The position numbers and the translations under genes are program-made. Below, in pieces: positions 38,930-46,271 of a DNA stretch of 64,000 bases. The stretch is from the sequence record ON529857.1; one strand, written 5' to 3'. Position 1 is the first letter of the stretch. Each line of letters opens with the position of its first letter. The notes beneath the pieces are model-generated. The model was not told the origin of the DNA. It did no database searches and saw only the letters and a list, made by a program, of their open reading frames with translations.

Positions 38930-38966
38930 AAAAGAAAAGGCCCGCCTGGGTTTCCAGGCGGGCCTT
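38930..38966 (-). terminator. Intrinsic terminator (attenuator) ahead of tRNA operon 1
   Basis: 13-bp stem AAGGCCCGCCTGG-AAAC-CCAGGCGGGCCTT followed by TTCTTTT. Confidence 0.9.
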
Positions 38967-38993
38967 CGAAGCTTGTTGCTGACTGTCTGGGGA

Positions 38994-39089
38994 CTATCCG
39001 CCCACCAAACCATCGCACATGCACGAACGGCCCGCCCGGTAAAACCGGACGACGCGAATGTTCTGCACGTTTTGGCGATAGGTCATCAT
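38994..39089 (-). CDS. Leader peptide 1 (31 aa, leaderless): MMTYRQNVQNIRVVRFYRAGRSCMCDGLVGG
   Basis: Not in the ORF track. ATG lies 7 nt after the -10 element; residues 4-18 use only amino acids of the downstream tRNAs. Confidence 0.85.
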   Translation of the reverse strand: MMTYRQNVQNIRVVRFYRAGRSCMCDGLVGG

Positions 39090-39096
39090 GGATTTG

Positions 39097-39125
39097 CTTT
39101 TACGCGATCTCTTTTATCGTGTCAA
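39097..39125 (-). promoter_or_regulatory. Sigma70-type promoter of tRNA operon 1
   Basis: TTGACA-N17-TAAAAG. Confidence 0.75.
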
Positions 39126-41979: not shown

Positions 41980-42395
41980 GGCGGCAGGAGTTTTAGAGGT
42001 GATGCGTCACCGGGCAAGCCCCCTGCCAGAAACCCCGTCTCCGCTTTTGTTAGGTCCAGAGACGAACGACCCTTCAAAGGCTCACATGGCACGACGTCGT
42101 CTCACGCGCTTCAGGCGTAGTCGCCCGAAACCGCAAGCCCGAGAGGTGGTGCACGATGGTATCGCCTTCCCGTGGCGACGTCTCGCGACGCCGCGATGTC
42201 TTACGACGCCTCTTCCCGGCCGCGTTCCGGAAAGAGGCGTCTAGCTGTTTGCGTGGAAACCGGACAAGCTCGCCCTACTCCCTAAGCAGTCCACGCTCCT
42301 CTGCTCGCGTCGTCCGGTCTGACGCTTCGCTCATCCAAGGCCTGGGTCTTTCGACCGGAACGTGCGCTACGTCAGGCCGCCGGGGATGTCTGTGT
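41980..42395 (-). ncRNA. Putative large structured ncRNA (~420 nt)
   Basis: No credible ORF. 15-bp hairpin at 42205..42241, GNRA-capped hairpins (GGTC-GAAA-GACC, CGTC-GCGA-GACG) and further helices; promoter-like TTGACG at 42424..42429. Confidence 0.55.
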
Positions 42396-42429
42396 GGGGA
42401 TTACTGGCACTGTTCGACACCGACGTCAA

Positions 42430-42465
42430 CAAAGAAAAACGCCCCGGCGTTTCGGCCGGGGCGTT
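42430..42465 (-). terminator. Intrinsic terminator ending tRNA operon 2
   Basis: AACGCCCCGG-N8-CCGGGGCGTT followed by TTTCTTT. Confidence 0.85.
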
Positions 42466-42467
42466 CT

Positions 42468-42782
42468 TCAGAGGTTCATCATCCACTGCTTGCGGTGGCG
42501 CGTGAAATCCTTCCAGGATTTGCCGGCGCGACGGGACGCCATGATGTCGTCCCAGGAGGACGGCAGGTGCTTCCGGCGCCCACGCACGGGGACGACGCGA
42601 TCATGAACGTCGCCCGCGTTTCGGCGGCGCTCCTGCATGGTGCGCGGATGCCGGAAATACTGCCGCCAGCGATGGCGAAAGCGCCGGCAGGGGTAGGGGT
42701 CGCCGGGCTCCGCATGGTAGATCGTCCAAGGCCCGACGAAATAGTATCCGGTATGGGTGATGCGTTGGAATTGGGGCTTCAA
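42468..42782 (-). CDS. Basic hypothetical protein (104 aa)
   Basis: GGAGG before the TTG start; C-terminal HLPSSWDDI...SWK...KQW motif; followed by a terminator. Confidence 0.7.
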   Translation of the reverse strand: MKPQFQRITHTGYYFVGPWTIYHAEPGDPYPCRRFRHRWRQYFRHPRTMQERRRNAGDVHDRVVPVRGRRKHLPSSWDDIMASRRAGKSWKDFTRHRKQWMMNL

Positions 42783-42885
42783 AACAGCCTCCTGTCAGGT
42801 TGATTACCTAACGGGTGCTGTGCTCCAGGTAGAACTTGATCATCATGGCCCCATGATACGGCAAGCTGGGCCGTTGGTCCAGAAT

Positions 42886-42974
42886 TGGTGGATGGAGCAG
42901 GGATCGAACCTGCGTAACGCTCTCGCGTGTCGACCGCTTAGCAAGCGGCTGCCTTACCTCTCGGCCACCCATCC
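42886..42974 (-). tRNA. tRNA-Ser(GCT)
   Basis: Loop TTGCTAA, long variable arm, CCA. Confidence 0.88.
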
Positions 42975-42981
42975 GGGGTGG

Positions 42982-43066
42982 TGGCGGTGCGCCAGGGAAT
43001 CGAACCCTCGACCTTGCGGTCGGCTACGGTTTTCAAGGCCGCTTGTCCCCATGGACGCTGCACACC
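42982..43066 (-). tRNA. tRNA-Ser(TGA)
   Basis: Loop CTTGAAA, long variable arm, G73, CCA. Confidence 0.82.
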
Positions 43067-43071
43067 AATGA

Positions 43072-43161
43072 TGGCGGACGGCGAGGGATTTGAACCCCCG
43101 GACCCTTGCGGGCCGCCTGCTTTCCGGGCAGGTGCCTTAAGCCGGACTCAGCCAGCCGTCC
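43072..43161 (-). tRNA. tRNA-Ser(GGA), C33
   Basis: Loop CCGGAAA, long variable arm, G73, CCA. Confidence 0.88.
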
Positions 43162-43166
43162 GTTGT

Positions 43167-43384
43167 TGGTGGAGGCGAGGGGATTCGAACCCCCGTAGAC
43201 GCCGAACCCCCGCATTACCAGGGGCCGATCTTCGGTTTAGAACGCGTGTGCCGCCCTGACCATCTTCCGCAGGCCAGGAGGTCTATCGTAACGACCCCGT
43301 CGATCGGTTGCCTCTGCGCCCCGGTTTTACCCGGACCGTTATTCTGTTCCACGGTGCTCATGCCGAAACCCGAGCGACGCCCCC
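43167..43384 (-). ncRNA. ssrA: Short one-piece tmRNA-like gene (218 nt)
   Basis: Ala-type acceptor GGGGGCG/CGCCTCC with G3-U70, A73 and CCA; T-arm GGGGG-TTCGAAT-CCCCT; stemless D-loop ending GGTTTCGGC; no anticodon arm. Confidence 0.65.
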
Positions 43385-43393
43385 GTGAAGAAA

Positions 43394-43481
43394 TGGAGGA
43401 TGGTGTGGGATTCGAACCCACGGAACCTTGCGGTCCTCCGGCTTTCGAAACCGGTGCGATCGGCCACTCCGCCAACCATCC
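43394..43481 (-). tRNA. tRNA-Ser(CGA)
   Basis: Loop TTCGAAA, long variable arm, CCA (U73). Confidence 0.88.
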
Positions 43482-43488
43482 ATATCAG

Positions 43489-43674
43489 TCAGACGGTCGC
43501 CGGACTGTAGTTGTCGATGTCGTCGACCCGGATCGCCGTTCCCGCCGCGATCTGGCGGTCGGCGCTCAACAGGTCGGCGACCAGGGCCTCCGCCGAGACG
43601 TCGCCTCCGGTGGTGGCGAACTTGACGTTCACCATTCCGTTGTCGTACATCTCGGCGATCGCTGAGCGATCCAT
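43489..43674 (-). CDS. Small hypothetical protein inside tRNA operon 2
   Basis: AAAGG before MDRSAIAE; natural amino-acid composition. Confidence 0.55.
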   Translation of the reverse strand: MDRSAIAEMYDNGMVNVKFATTGGDVSAEALVADLLSADRQIAAGTAIRVDDIDNYSPATV

Positions 43675-43707
43675 GGCAGGCCTTTCTGCCGGCATCACCG
43701 GCGGTTA

Positions 43708-43783
43708 TGGTGGAGATGAGGGGAGTCGAACCCCTGACATCCTGCTTGCAAGGCAGGTGCTCTACCAACTGAGCTACATCCCC
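43708..43783 (-). tRNA. tRNA-Ala(TGC)
   Basis: Canonical; G3-U70, loop CTTGCAA, CCA. Confidence 0.95.
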
Positions 43784-43813
43784 AAGATGGGTGTCAGTTT
43801 TCCTGACGAATGT

Positions 43814-43889
43814 TGGGCCTGGCACTCGGATTCGAACCGAGCCGTGCGGTTCCACAAACCGCCGCCTCCACCGCAGAGGCTTTACCAGG
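43814..43889 (-). tRNA. tRNA-His(GTG)
   Basis: Loop TTGTGGA, C73, CCA. Confidence 0.85.
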
Positions 43890-43892
43890 ATT

Positions 43893-43980
43893 TGGTCGCA
43901 GCGACAGGGATCGAACCTGCCCGGCCTTTCGGCCACCAGCCTCTCATGCTGGCGCGTCTACCAGACTCCGCCACGCTGCG
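43893..43980 (-). tRNA. tRNA-Leu(GAG)
   Basis: Loop ATGAGAG, class II arm, CCA. Confidence 0.9.
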
Positions 43981-43989
43981 ATCAAGTTT

Positions 43990-44075
43990 TGGTGCCGGTG
44001 GTGGGATTCGCACCCACCCGCCACTAAGGACACCAGTTTCTGAAACTGGCGCGTCTACTGCTTCGCCACACCGGC
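43990..44075 (-). tRNA. tRNA-Leu(CAG), copy with variant T-loop TGCGAAT
   Basis: Loop TTCAGAA, class II arm, CCA. Confidence 0.85.
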
Positions 44076-44085
44076 AATGATGTGT

Positions 44086-44171
44086 TGGTGCCCGCCCCCG
44101 GACTCGAACCGGGACGCCACAAGGGCCACGCCTTTTGAGGACGCTGCGTCTACCTTTCCGTCCAGACGGGC
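44086..44171 (-). tRNA. tRNA-Leu(CAA)
   Basis: Loop CTCAAAA, class II arm, CCA. Confidence 0.88.
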
Positions 44172-44181
44172 TTGAGAAAGA

Positions 44182-44267
44182 TGGTGCGGGCGAGAGGATT
44201 CGAACCTCCCCGGCACAAGGCCACGGGCATCTGAAGCCCGCGCGGCTACCAGCTTCGCCACGCCCGC
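44182..44267 (-). tRNA. tRNA-Leu(CAG)
   Basis: Loop TTCAGAT, class II arm, CCA. Confidence 0.9.
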
Positions 44268-44271
44268 ACTT

Positions 44272-44353
44272 TGGAGAACCACGGTGGAGTCGAACCACTT
44301 GCGCCTGGATTAAAAGTCCAATCCCGGCCACCCGGATTTAACGCTCGTGGTCC
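44272..44353 (-). tRNA. tRNA-Lys(TTT), enlarged D region
   Basis: Loop CTTTTAA, T-arm, CCA; ~25 nt between acceptor and anticodon stems. Confidence 0.75.
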
Positions 44354-44368
44354 TTGATTCTCAAATAT

Positions 44369-44455
44369 TGGAGGATATGGTGGGACTCGAACCCACGATG
44401 GACTTTCGTCAGAGGATTAAGAGCCCTCCCCTCTCGCCGCTGAGGTGACATATCC
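44369..44455 (-). tRNA. tRNA-Lys(CTT) with long variable arm
   Basis: Loop CTCTTAA; variable arm TGACGAAAGTCCATC; CCA. Confidence 0.8.
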
Positions 44456-44494
44456 GCTTAAACTGTATAGCGTCTCCATGAAGACTGTTGTTGA

Positions 44495-44565
44495 TGGTGC
44501 CAGCGGAGCGGGATCGCACCCTCCTCCAACCACTACGAAAGGCTGGTCCTCCTAGAGGCGCCGGC
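44495..44565 (-). tRNA. Atypical tRNA-Thr(CGT), minimal D-arm
   Basis: Acceptor GCCGGCG/CGCTGGC, D-arm CCTC-TAG-GAGG, loop centred on CGT, variant T-loop, CCA. Confidence 0.6.
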
Positions 44566-44573
44566 GTTGTTTT

Positions 44574-44644
44574 TGGTGCCAAGAGTGGGAGTCAAACCCA
44601 CCCTGAACCCCTACCACGGGCTCGTCCGGTCACCCGGCCTTGGC
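44574..44644 (-). tRNA. Atypical tRNA-Thr(GGT), minimal D-arm
   Basis: Acceptor GCCAAGG/TCTTGGC, arm AGCCC-GTGGTAG-GGGTT, T-loop TTTGACT, CCA. Confidence 0.62.
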
Positions 44645-44651
44645 GTTATCC

Positions 44652-44726
44652 TGGTCAGAGCGGGAGGGATTGAACCTCCGACCCCTGCCTTCCCGAGACA
44701 GTGCGCTACCCCTGCGCTACGCTCTG
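44652..44726 (-). tRNA. tRNA-Pro(GGG), C33
   Basis: C1-G72 pair, loop TCGGGAA, CCA. Confidence 0.85.
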
Positions 44727-44729
44727 ATC

Positions 44730-44804
44730 TGGTCTGGGCCGAGGGGATCGAACCCCCGTCCTCCGGCTCCCAAAGCCGGCGCCTAACCGCTCGGCCAGAC
44801 CCAG
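44730..44804 (-). tRNA. tRNA-Pro(TGG)
   Basis: Loop TTTGGGA, CCA. Confidence 0.88.
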
Positions 44805-44823
44805 ACTGTTGTTAAGGAATGAA

Positions 44824-44901
44824 TGGTCTGCGTATCAGGATTTGAACCTGAGACCCCCGCGCTCCGAAGGCGGTACTCTGACCAGGCTGAGCTATACGCA
44901 G
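44824..44901 (-). tRNA. tRNA-Pro(CGG)
   Basis: Loop TTCGGAG, CCA. Confidence 0.88.
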
Positions 44902-44906
44902 ATGTG

Positions 44907-44945
44907 AAAAACGAAAAGGCCCCAAAGGCGATGCGCCTGGGGCCT
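44907..44945 (-). terminator. Intrinsic terminator (attenuator) ahead of tRNA operon 2
   Basis: AGGCCCCA-GGCG-CAT-CGCC-TT-TGGGGCCT followed by TTTCGTTTTT; ends 5 nt before tRNA-Pro. Confidence 0.88.
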
Positions 44946-45015
44946 AAAACAGCTGCTGATTTGGGAGTTCAGCAGGTGATCGGCCCCTCGGGCGCCTCAC
45001 CTGCTGCGAGAGACC

Positions 45016-45153
45016 TTAGATGGTCTCCGTTGCAGAGGTGACGCCACCGGTGGTGGGGGATTTCGGCGACAGCGTGGCCGGCGCATGGGCGAGCGTCGAC
45101 AGCGCCGTAGCGGCGGTCGAATGAAGGCTCAGCTTGTGCGACAACTTGGTCAC
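45016..45153 (-). CDS. Leader peptide 2 (45 aa): MTKLSHKLSLHSTAATALSTLAHAPATLSPKSPTTGGVTSATETI
   Basis: Not in the ORF track. AAGGA 8 nt before GTG; residues 2-35 use only T, K, L, S, H, A and P. Confidence 0.88.
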   Translation of the reverse strand: MTKLSHKLSLHSTAATALSTLAHAPATLSPKSPTTGGVTSATETI

Positions 45154-45201
45154 GAGAGAAATCCTTAGAAGGAAGGGCGCCGAAACGCGATTGAAGTCTC
45201 A

Positions 45202-45230
45202 CCTTTACAGCAAGCTTTTCCGCTTGTCAA
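45202..45230 (-). promoter_or_regulatory. Sigma70-type promoter of tRNA operon 2
   Basis: TTGACA-N17-TAAAGG. Confidence 0.75.
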
Positions 45231-45305: not shown

Positions 45306-45353
45306 AAAAAGAGATGCGCGCGGCCTCGGGGGAGCGGGAAGGCCGCGCGCATC
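45306..45353 (-). terminator. Intrinsic terminator insulating the operon 2 promoter
   Basis: 14-bp stem GATGCGCGCGGCCT/AGGCCGCGCGCATC followed by TCTTTTT. Confidence 0.85.
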
Positions 45354-46135: not shown

Positions 46136-46169
46136 ACAGAACACGAGCCGACCTCTACGAGTACCGCTT

Positions 46170-46235
46170 TTAGGCGGTGCGCGTATCTCGGCCCGTGAAG
46201 GCCTCTCGCTCTCGAATGGACGTCAGGTAGGTCAT
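46170..46235 (-). CDS. Candidate leader peptide 3 (21 aa, leaderless): MTYLTSIREREAFTGRDTRTA
   Basis: ATG 7 nt after the -10 element, the same geometry as leader 1; ends ~35 nt before tRNA-Glu. Confidence 0.55.
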   Translation of the reverse strand: MTYLTSIREREAFTGRDTRTA

Positions 46236-46242
46236 AACGGGA

Positions 46243-46271
46243 CTATTAACAGAATCGCTTTTCGGTGTCAA
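46243..46271 (-). promoter_or_regulatory. Sigma70-type promoter of the Glu/Asp tRNA unit
   Basis: TTGACA-N17-TAATAG. Confidence 0.7.

Follow-up and report, generated by a model that had tools for sequence, protein, structure and literature searches.

A putative ribosome-mediated attenuator ahead of a tRNA gene cluster in the Brevundimonas jumbo phage vB_BpoS-Kikimora

Introduction

How does a phage control the expression of its own tRNA genes? Phage tRNAs are now viewed as a codon supply and as a counter to host defences that cleave tRNAs, and to our knowledge the control of their expression is essentially unknown. The question is raised by a locus of the Brevundimonas jumbo phage vB_BpoS-Kikimora (record ON529857.1; 312.6 kb), a member of the Dolichocephalovirinae. 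We analysed a window of 64,000 nucleotides (nt) from this genome, in which 186000 has to be added to a window position to obtain the position in the record. The window contains 24 tRNA genes called by ARAGORN, all of them on the minus strand and grouped in four sub-clusters. Directly upstream of the largest sub-cluster (44901..42886, minus strand) lies a leader unit with a short open reading frame (ORF), and the GenBank record carries no annotation from the preceding gene up to the first tRNA gene, tRNA-Pro. On the strength of statistics, comparative genomics and folding, we consider it probable that this unit is a ribosome-mediated attenuator, which would gate the tRNA operon by the speed at which the cognate codons of the leader are decoded.

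Results

The leader and the tRNA cluster as a putative transcription unit

The gene upstream of the leader ends in an intrinsic terminator of its own (Table 1), and this terminator insulates the leader unit from upstream transcription. It is followed by a promoter-like site that is conserved in seven B. pondensis phages. The motif TTGACA-N17-TAAWAG occurs three times in the window, against 0.08 occurrences expected, and each occurrence precedes the leader ORF of a tRNA sub-cluster. The 5′ untranslated region (5′UTR) of the Kikimora leader measures 42 nt and includes a Shine-Dalgarno-like site. At the other end of the unit, only 5 nt separate the T-tract of a second intrinsic terminator from tRNA-Pro, which begins at 44901. 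This gap is too short to hold a promoter. The upstream terminator and a promoter-like site of its own mark the leader with its tRNA cluster as an independent unit. From the leader down to position 43708 the genes are exclusively tRNA genes, after which a single ORF of 69 amino acids (aa) is found within the cluster. The locus thus combines a promoter-proximal ORF with a start signal, cognate codons, an intrinsic terminator and a mutually exclusive antiterminator, as attenuators do, while the genes downstream of the leader fall outside the classical scope of attenuation, namely biosynthesis or aminoacyl-tRNA synthetase targets. An ORF of 77 aa in an alternative frame (45202..44969) was rejected as a gene, as it is absent in Bambus and Marchewka.

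The leader codons match the downstream tRNAs

The predicted translation of the leader ORF is MTKLSHKLSLHSTAATALSTLAHAPATLSPKSPTTGGVTSATETI. Codons 2 to 35, which we refer to as the control codons, specify nothing but Thr, Lys, Leu, Ser, His, Ala and Pro, and our recount of the residues agreed with the composition given in a preliminary description of this DNA (T7 K3 L6 S6 H3 A6 P3). Together these seven amino acids account for 41% of the phage proteome. The number of fully in-set windows of 34 residues expected in 64 kb is 1.3e-7; the leader is the sole run of at least 18 in-set residues in all six frames of the window. By our own arithmetic, one given set of 7 out of 20 amino acids is 1 in 77,520.

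The readability of the control codons was scored by ordinary wobble rules, with random 34-codon stretches from the long ORFs of the phage as background. The 12 distinct anticodons called by ARAGORN downstream of the leader can read 22 of the 34 control codons (background 9.3 +/- 2.9), and none of 200,000 random samples reached 23 of 34. Each of the 12 called anticodons, in turn, has at least one codon in the leader (P = 2.4e-4). When low-score and hand-parsed tRNA genes were included, the number of readable control codons rose to 30 of 34. This is in agreement with the preliminary description, according to which the leader codons correspond to the downstream anticodons and GCC and GCT have only Ala-TGC: the four unread codons are GCC (three times) and GCT. 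Moreover, with the Thr-like and low-score genes counted, leader and cluster have one and the same amino-acid set (P, T, K, L, H, A, S).

Conceivably, the same attenuator could respond to amino-acid supply via tRNA charging, or to global translation capacity, in which case the control codons would merely be common ones. Such a signal would be compatible with the folding described below, where any delay of the ribosome, and even a complete lack of translation, yields the read-through fold. It would also be compatible with the 41% share of the seven amino acids in the proteome, and with the reported match between phage tRNAs and the most-used codons of the phage (Gill et al., PMC3556154). On the other hand, a general signal would not account for the exact coincidence of the leader set with the tRNA species of this sub-cluster, for the sampling of all 12 anticodons, or for the different set in the leader of another sub-cluster, which matches the tRNAs of that sub-cluster (Y, V, I, Q, N). 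Nor would it account for the distribution of Trp codons. A Trp codon is present in the main body of the leader only in the Bertelyviruses, the lineage that has a tRNA-Trp within this cluster; outside the Bertelyviruses, Trp codons were found only in the structural distal part of the leader, in Bambus and Marchewka. We therefore regard a supply or capacity signal as unlikely, while giving it a small but appreciable chance, and favour an attenuator that responds to the decoding of its cognate codons.

A predicted switch between read-through and termination

All segments named in the preliminary description were found where it had placed them (Table 1). Segment 0, near the end of the ORF, can pair with segment A. 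The resulting helix encloses an inner hairpin of 7 bp, whose loop contains the Ile codon and the TAA. The relatives that were folded also have a hairpin at the stop codon, which may occupy the loop, one of the arms or the base; the sequence of this hairpin differs between phages, and it is weakest in phiCbK. Alternatively, segment A can pair with segment B, and B in turn with segment C, while GGGGCC at 44987..44982 is complementary to GGCCCC at 44944..44939 in the 5′ arm of the terminator. The last pair of this terminator, A44945-U44917, takes the first U of the following run UUUUCGUUUUU, and the T-tract ends at 44907. A simple terminator scanner missed the structure because of its bulge; the homologous site in phiCbK is annotated as a terminator. 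The isolated hairpins 0:A, A:B and the terminator have energies of -27.3, -26.6 and -21.2 kcal/mol, respectively, and the antiterminator, which consists of B:C, GGGGCC:GGCCCC and GCGCC:GGCGC, reaches -35.3 kcal/mol.

These elements suggest the following course of events. Transcription would start at the promoter 45230..45202, and a ribosome would translate the leader behind the moving RNA polymerase, so that reading the 34 control codons would call on each tRNA species of the cluster. If decoding is fast, the ribosome would arrive at codons ~36-45 and cover or melt segment 0 before segment B emerges; A would then pair with B, the terminator would form, and transcription would stop 5 nt ahead of tRNA-Pro. 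If decoding is slow at any of these codons, because charged cognate tRNA is scarce, or if the leader is not translated, segment 0 would capture A. As a consequence, B would be free to pair with C, the region GGCGCC..GGGGCC would pair with the 5′ arm of the terminator, and the polymerase would enter the tRNA genes. The outcome would be a feedback that links decoding capacity to tRNA synthesis.

The folding of this region was modelled with the ribosome placed codon by codon, and only the RNA 3′ of the ribosome was allowed to fold. A first ribosome-mask model, which let pairs span the ribosome, was dropped because it produced physically impossible states; its whole-leader run preferred the terminator, indicating that the two states are close in energy. 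In the growing Kikimora transcript, with the ribosome at codon 32 or earlier, 0:A formed first, followed by B:C and then by the full antiterminator. With segment 0 free, the final antiterminated state was at -69.8 vs -62.9 for the best state with A:B and the terminator, a preference of ~7 kcal/mol. When the 5′ end of the folded RNA was placed just past the stop codon, A:B formed once B had been made and remained the minimum until the 5′ arm of the terminator emerged. Barriers along the direct path out of the state with A:B and the terminator were 16-28 kcal/mol by a heuristic estimate, which would make escape far too slow in the roughly one second available. Since the terminated state of Kikimora is not the equilibrium minimum, the modelled switch would be thermodynamic toward read-through and kinetic toward termination. 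In phiCbK and BL10, the equilibrium probability of the terminator was ~0 with the ribosome at codons 1-33 and ~1 from codon ~36 to the stop, the change coming as the ribosome passed codon ~34. It rose from ~0.3 to above 0.9 in Domovoi and from ~0.4 to ~0.9 in Colossus. The switch was clean at equilibrium in phiCbK, BL10 and Domovoi, and Bambus and Bajun resembled Kikimora. For an untranslated leader, the local model and the phiCbK profile predict the read-through fold, which implies that termination needs active and timely translation.

The alternative pairings put forward in the preliminary description were thereby upheld in one direction and modified in the other. With segment 0 free, 0:A and the antiterminator did form as it had proposed, while its combination of A:B with the terminator is reached in Kikimora only kinetically. 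Its B:C antiterminator forms as well, but by itself leaves the terminator unblocked; it is the pairing of GGGGCC with GGCCCC and of GCGCC with GGCGC that blocks it. The multi-hairpin architecture resembling that of the his attenuator, as suggested there, is supported by the folding of Kikimora and of relatives with quite different sequences. For instance, phiCbK has an A:B helix CGGGUGC/GCACCCG and an antiterminator GGAGCCGC:GCGGCUCC, and the sequences differ from those of Kikimora while order and logic are alike. Covariation had been named there as a check. The RNAalifold consensus of eight Brevundimonas phages contained segment -1 (the small hairpin with which the control codons end), A:B and the terminator, but showed hardly any covariation.

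To judge how specific the sequestration of the terminator is, native upstream sequences were compared with 300 dinucleotide shuffles per phage. In six phages, the native sequence sequestered the terminator more than 94-99% of the shuffles did; 2 of 300 shuffles matched the native sequestration in Kikimora, and 6-17 of 300 in the other five. The minimum free energy z-scores of the whole switch region ranged from -3.5 to -6.5 in eight phages.

A related possibility is that translation of the leader matters but is read out differently, through access of Rho, RNase processing or precursor stability, with the hairpins serving as processing signals. This would suit the Colossusvirus and Bertelyvirus homologues, which retain the leader and hairpins with poor U-tracts, and the third unit of Kikimora (ahead of Glu and Asp), which has a stop-codon hairpin without a U-tract. 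It would not account for the textbook GC stems and U-runs that Kikimora, the other Brevundimonas phages and the phiCbK/BL10/Rogue lineage have just before tRNA-Pro, nor for the specific complementarity between the upstream sequence and the 5′ arm of the terminator. We consider such a readout improbable, and continue with transcription attenuation as the preferred explanation.

The leader family in related phages

Homologous leader ORFs were found ahead of the same cluster in 16 phages from five genera of the Dolichocephalovirinae. They comprise seven further Brevundimonas phages, CcrColossus and CcrPW (in both of which the ORF is unannotated), the annotated genes phiCbK gp083, CcrBL10 gp078 and CcrRogue gp083, and the Bertelyviruses CcrSC, BL9 and RB23. 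When IMG/VR was scanned for exact occurrences of three conserved motifs of the leader, only chance matches were returned besides the known CcrColossus and CcrPW. A scan anchored on the NTPase encoded next to the leader gave no match, and no further leader lineage came from these scans.

Across the 16 phages, 84-95% of the leader residues are in-set though the sequence changes, as compared to a proteome expectation of 41%. In close pairs, 20 of 22 leader replacements stay within the set, against 46% under a null of random nonsynonymous single-base changes (binomial ~1e-5 by our own arithmetic). Many of them exchange chemically very different residues (K>T, L>P, H>L, H>K and S>L), which is not the pattern to be expected if selection acted on the fold of a peptide. 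Nonsynonymous changes occur no less often than silent ones, and yet nucleotide identity is high: the control codons of Kikimora are 87-89% identical to those of Domovoi and Bambus. Between Kikimora and Domovoi, the control codons (87%) and the block from segment A to the terminator (86%) are conserved to a similar extent, as compared to 59% for the 5′UTR and 51% for codons 36-45 plus spacer, where the stop-codon hairpin is nevertheless still present. Furthermore, where the control block has gained or lost sequence, it has done so by whole codons.

These data bear on the idea that the ORF encodes a genuine small protein and that the hairpin is merely its terminator, leaking into the tRNA genes. 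A hypothetical protein is annotated at this position in phiCbK, BL10, Rogue, CcrSC, BL9, RB23 and Bajun, and in a hidden Markov model search phiCbK gp083 matched phrog_12742 at 4.8e-28, a PHROG for which the function is listed as not known. The same type of search gave no PHROG match, phrog_12742 included, for the leaders of Kikimora, Colossus and CcrSC. With radical replacements restricted to a set defined by the tRNAs, with amino acids that change at least as readily as silent positions while the nucleotide sequence is held, and with tRNA genes that would be left without a promoter of their own, a genuine small protein is very improbable. Small "hypothetical proteins" such as gp083 are, instead, probably regulatory leaders. 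That the region is a structured non-coding RNA (a small regulatory RNA or a ligand-sensing riboswitch) with an incidental ORF is scarcely credible despite its stability (z = -6.5), as no Rfam family matches it, as frame, start codon and whole-codon indels are maintained over five genera, and as the strongest constraint, membership in the amino-acid set, is inexplicable for an element that acts as RNA only.

The downstream tRNA cluster

In the direction of transcription, the cluster runs Pro CGG, Pro TGG, Pro GGG, (Thr-like GGT, Thr-like CGT), Lys CTT, (Lys TTT), Leu CAG, CAA, CAG, GAG, His GTG, Ala TGC, Ser CGA, Ser GGA, (Ser TGA) and Ser GCT, where brackets denote low-score or hand-parsed genes. 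It holds at least 13 tRNA genes, the ARAGORN calls being three Pro, one Lys, four Leu, one His, one Ala and three Ser.

The two Thr-like genes occupy a 196-nt gap after the third tRNA-Pro gene. They are elements of 71-73 nt with GGCACCA ends, D-stems of 4 bp, D-loops of 3-4 nt, and GGU or CGU in anticodon loops of 7 or 9 nt. Neither ARAGORN nor Rfam detected them. Their positions correspond to a called tRNA-Thr(GGT) in Bajun, BL10 and Rogue and to a called tRNA-Thr(CGT) in CcrSC, and the Kikimora genes align with these called genes of the relatives. Both are kept in Gurke, Domovoi and Bambus, with 89% identity in Domovoi and Bambus and a compensatory change in the T-stem. Two further genes, Lys-TTT and Ser-TGA, carry no annotation in the Kikimora record; Lys-TTT is 96% conserved in Domovoi and Bambus. 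The analysis thus reveals several tRNA genes overlooked by standard finders, and the published tRNA counts of these phages are probably too low.

Some further observations were made in and around the cluster. The Lys CUU tRNA (44369..44455, minus strand) measures 87 nt and has a long variable arm and a discriminator U, giving it a class-II architecture like that of Leu and Ser tRNAs; the homologues in phiCbK, Colossus, BL10 and CcrSC share this architecture, an uncommon one for a tRNA-Lys of bacterial type. Between two of the tRNA-Ser genes, the stretch 43167..43298 (minus strand) gave a weak match to the tmRNA model (32 bits, under the gathering score), and this is possibly another degenerate tRNA-like element. 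The 69-aa ORF mentioned above, KIKIMORA_03770 (43489..43698, minus strand), lies between tRNA-Ala and tRNA-Ser and is kept in all Brevundimonas relatives. Just beyond the cluster, the Kikimora record has a 215-aa ORF at 42156..42803 (plus strand), where Gurke and other relatives have a 104-aa ORF on the opposite strand (42468..42782, minus strand). The latter, on the strand of the tRNA genes, terminates in a strong terminator at 42469..42434, and the 215-aa call in Kikimora may be on the wrong strand.

Sister leader units in the window

Judged by its sequence, the stretch 38936..39125 (minus strand) is a second attenuator unit, with a promoter motif, an ORF and a strong terminator. Ten of residues 3-18 of this leader 1 belong to the set of its own cluster (Y, V, I, Q, N; P = 4e-4). 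It has the textbook 1:2/2:3/3:4 layout, with CCGGGCGGGCC within the ORF complementary to the 5′ arm of the terminator, and its modelled terminator probability drops to 0.1-0.2 only with the ribosome at codons ~11-15. Homologues of leader 1 are present in phiCbK and BL10. The third unit (46136..46271, minus strand) has the same promoter motif and is located directly before tRNA-Glu and tRNA-Asp. Its phiCbK homologue (MTHLLTRYEREATGLDTTTA) overlaps an annotated terminator, while the unit in Kikimora is without a U-tract. The ATG codons of leaders 1 and 3 lie 7 nt past the -10 hexamer, which suggests leaderless mRNAs.

Table 1. Coordinates of the main leader unit, its tRNA cluster and the sister leaders (window positions)
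Feature	Position	Strand	Description and basis
Intrinsic terminator of upstream gene	45306..45353	-	15-bp stem, -31.3 kcal/mol, z = -4.7, then UCUCUUUUUC
Promoter-like site TTGACA-N17-TAAAGG	45202..45230	-	Motif count and conservation
Shine-Dalgarno-like AAGGA	45162..45166	-	8 nt ahead of GTG start; from sequence
Leader ORF	45016..45153	-	GTG start, 45 codons, TAA; absent from GenBank annotation; homologous ORFs in relatives
Control codons 2-35	45049..45150	-	Solely T, K, L, S, H, A, P; composition, codon match, conservation
Segment -1 hairpin CCACC-ACC-GGUGG	45044..45056	-	End of control codons; -5.9 kcal/mol; in RNAalifold consensus of 8 phages
Segment 0, (GGCG)UCACCUCUGC, codons 37-41	45032..45045	-	Pairs with A; UCACCUCUGC itself at 45041..45032
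Inner hairpin GGAGACC/GGUCUCU	45009..45028	-	Loop holds last sense codon and TAA
Segment A, GCAGCAGGUGA	44997..45007	-	Partner 0 or B
Region 2, GGCGCCCGAGGGGCC	44982..44996	-	Apex of A:B hairpin, or antiterminator with terminator 5′ arm
Segment B, UCACCUGCUG(A)	44969..44979	-	10 bp with A or 7 bp with C
Segment C, UCAGCAG	44953..44959	-	Antiterminator base, paired with B
Intrinsic terminator, AGGCCCCAGGCG-CAU-CGCC-UU-UGGGGCCU	44907..44945	-	12-bp stem, 2-nt bulge, -21.2 kcal/mol
Regulated tRNA cluster	42886..44901	-	ARAGORN, low-score and hand-parsed genes
Thr-like gene, GGT	44574..44646	-	Cloverleaf fold, miniature D-arm
Thr-like gene, CGT	44492..44565	-	Cloverleaf fold, miniature D-arm
Lys-TTT	44272..44346	-	ARAGORN threshold 90%; weak Rfam tRNA-Sec-like match
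Ser-TGA	42982..43066	-	ARAGORN threshold 90%; weak Rfam tRNA-Sec-like match
Leader 1 ORF, MMTYRQNVQNIRVVRFYRAGRSCMCDGLVGG (begins MMTYRQNVQNIRVVRFYR)	38994..39089	-	Before tRNA Tyr, Val, Ile, Val, Gln, Asn
Leader 1 strong terminator	38936..38967	-	Ahead of Tyr-to-Asn tRNA sub-cluster
Leader 3 ORF, MTYLTSIREREAFTGRDTRTA	46170..46235	-	Stop codon in hairpin loop

Discussion

The composition of the leader, its conservation in related phages and the folding of its switch region point to an attenuator whose control codons probe the tRNAs encoded behind it. From these data we infer that the ORF is translated and that termination occurs, and likewise which way the switch works in vivo and to what signal it responds. 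The main uncertainty concerns the physiological signal, and U-tract termination as the readout in all lineages.

Several points weigh against this interpretation. The attenuator is proposed from sequence and folding, and one phiCbK RNA-seq paper is silent on the element, with no entries for gp080 to gp084 in its supplement. As regards decoding, the four Ala codons (GCC three times and GCT) have no Watson-Crick or G:U decoder in the phage, and the matches of the Thr codons (ACC/ACG) and of AAA depend on tRNA genes missed by standard tools. The Thr decoders, as well as the His decoder of phiCbK, are non-canonical or low-scoring putative tRNA genes, and because each tRNA species is represented by 1-4 scattered codons, the sensitivity of the leader to the loss of a single tRNA is uncertain. 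As regards folding, the equilibrium model of Kikimora, Bambus and Bajun shows no preference for the terminator when the ribosome is at the stop codon. In Kikimora with segment 0 covered, the state with A:B and the terminator is at -47.9 vs -48.5 for the alternative and is not the equilibrium minimum. As modelled, the termination branch of these three phages rests on a kinetic argument with heuristic barriers. In addition, Colossus and CcrSC, both with weak terminators, gave no significant result in the shuffle test, and the Colossusvirus and Bertelyvirus homologues are without a convincing U-tract. The near absence of covariation is attributable to a switch block that is nearly invariant in close relatives, and structural conservation across genera is argued by analogy, without a column-wise alignment.

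The search of known RNA families was negative at this locus. At the gathering score, Rfam returned tRNA matches only, with no leader family or T-box, and a relaxed search gave nothing credible on 44907..45230 (no leader, T-box or riboswitch). The relaxed search did produce a His_leader match with E = 0.86 elsewhere, at 42431..42547. In terms of architecture, a close comparison is the his operon leader (hisL; RF00514), in which a short ORF, a cascade of mutually exclusive hairpins and a terminator are likewise arranged such that the position of the ribosome decides. However, hisL has a run of 7 His codons and controls biosynthetic enzymes, whereas the Kikimora leader, which has no Rfam match, spreads codons for seven amino acids over 34 positions and would target tRNAs. 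The default state is also different, since an untranslated Kikimora leader is predicted to give read-through, whereas the untranslated default of his (and trp) is termination. Interspersed codons for several amino acids are known from the thr leader (Thr, Ile) and the ilvGMEDA and ilvBN leaders (Leu, Val, Ile). These leaders are limited to the two or three amino acids of one pathway, in contrast to the seven of Kikimora, which are set by the tRNA content of the operon; in Kikimora the choice of codons also samples individual isoacceptors.

Coupling of the translation apparatus to the state of cognate tRNAs is known from the pheM leader of pheST and from T-box riboswitches. The product in the case of pheST is a protein enzyme and only one amino acid is involved, whereas the products of the Kikimora operon are the tRNAs themselves; T-boxes, for their part, recognise uncharged tRNA by direct binding and need no ribosome, and a T-box was not detected at the Kikimora locus. 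Ribosome-dependent attenuation has been described in the Alphaproteobacteria, the class of the Kikimora host, for Sinorhizobium meliloti trpL (PMC6614838), which differs in that it involves a single amino acid and a biosynthetic target and is chromosomal. The mycobacterial leaderless polycysteine short ORFs (bioRxiv 10.1101/834739) are codon-specific sensors for the genes behind them, and resemble Kikimora leaders 1 and 3 in that these are probably leaderless too. They belong to another phylum and have another target, and the main Kikimora leader differs from them by its 42-nt 5′UTR and Shine-Dalgarno-like site.

In the literature on these phages, the study of Gill et al. 2012 (PMC3556154) includes the terminator in its annotation, is silent on a leader or attenuation, and reports that Rfam found no functional RNA except tRNAs, while the Kikimora paper (PMC10070969) only counted the tRNAs. 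A full-text literature search found no description of attenuation for a tRNA operon or for phage tRNA genes, absence from that search not being proof. In our judgement the chances are about even that the Dolichocephalovirinae autoregulate their tRNA operons via leaders that probe the downstream tRNAs codon by codon, and that this is the first attenuation of tRNA genes. Since the element is present in phiCbK, a phage of the model bacterium Caulobacter crescentus, the hypothesis is testable by standard genetics.

If the proposal is correct, classical attenuation would be extended to a new class of targets, and the leader, with 7 amino acids and 12-16 isoacceptors, would be the broadest multivalent leader known and a natural reporter of tRNA sufficiency. 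An untranslated leader would leave the operon ON by default, to be turned OFF by efficient decoding. For the phage this would mean that tRNA synthesis is homeostatic and becomes inducible when tRNAs are limiting, for example upon host shut-off or upon cleavage by a host anticodon nuclease.

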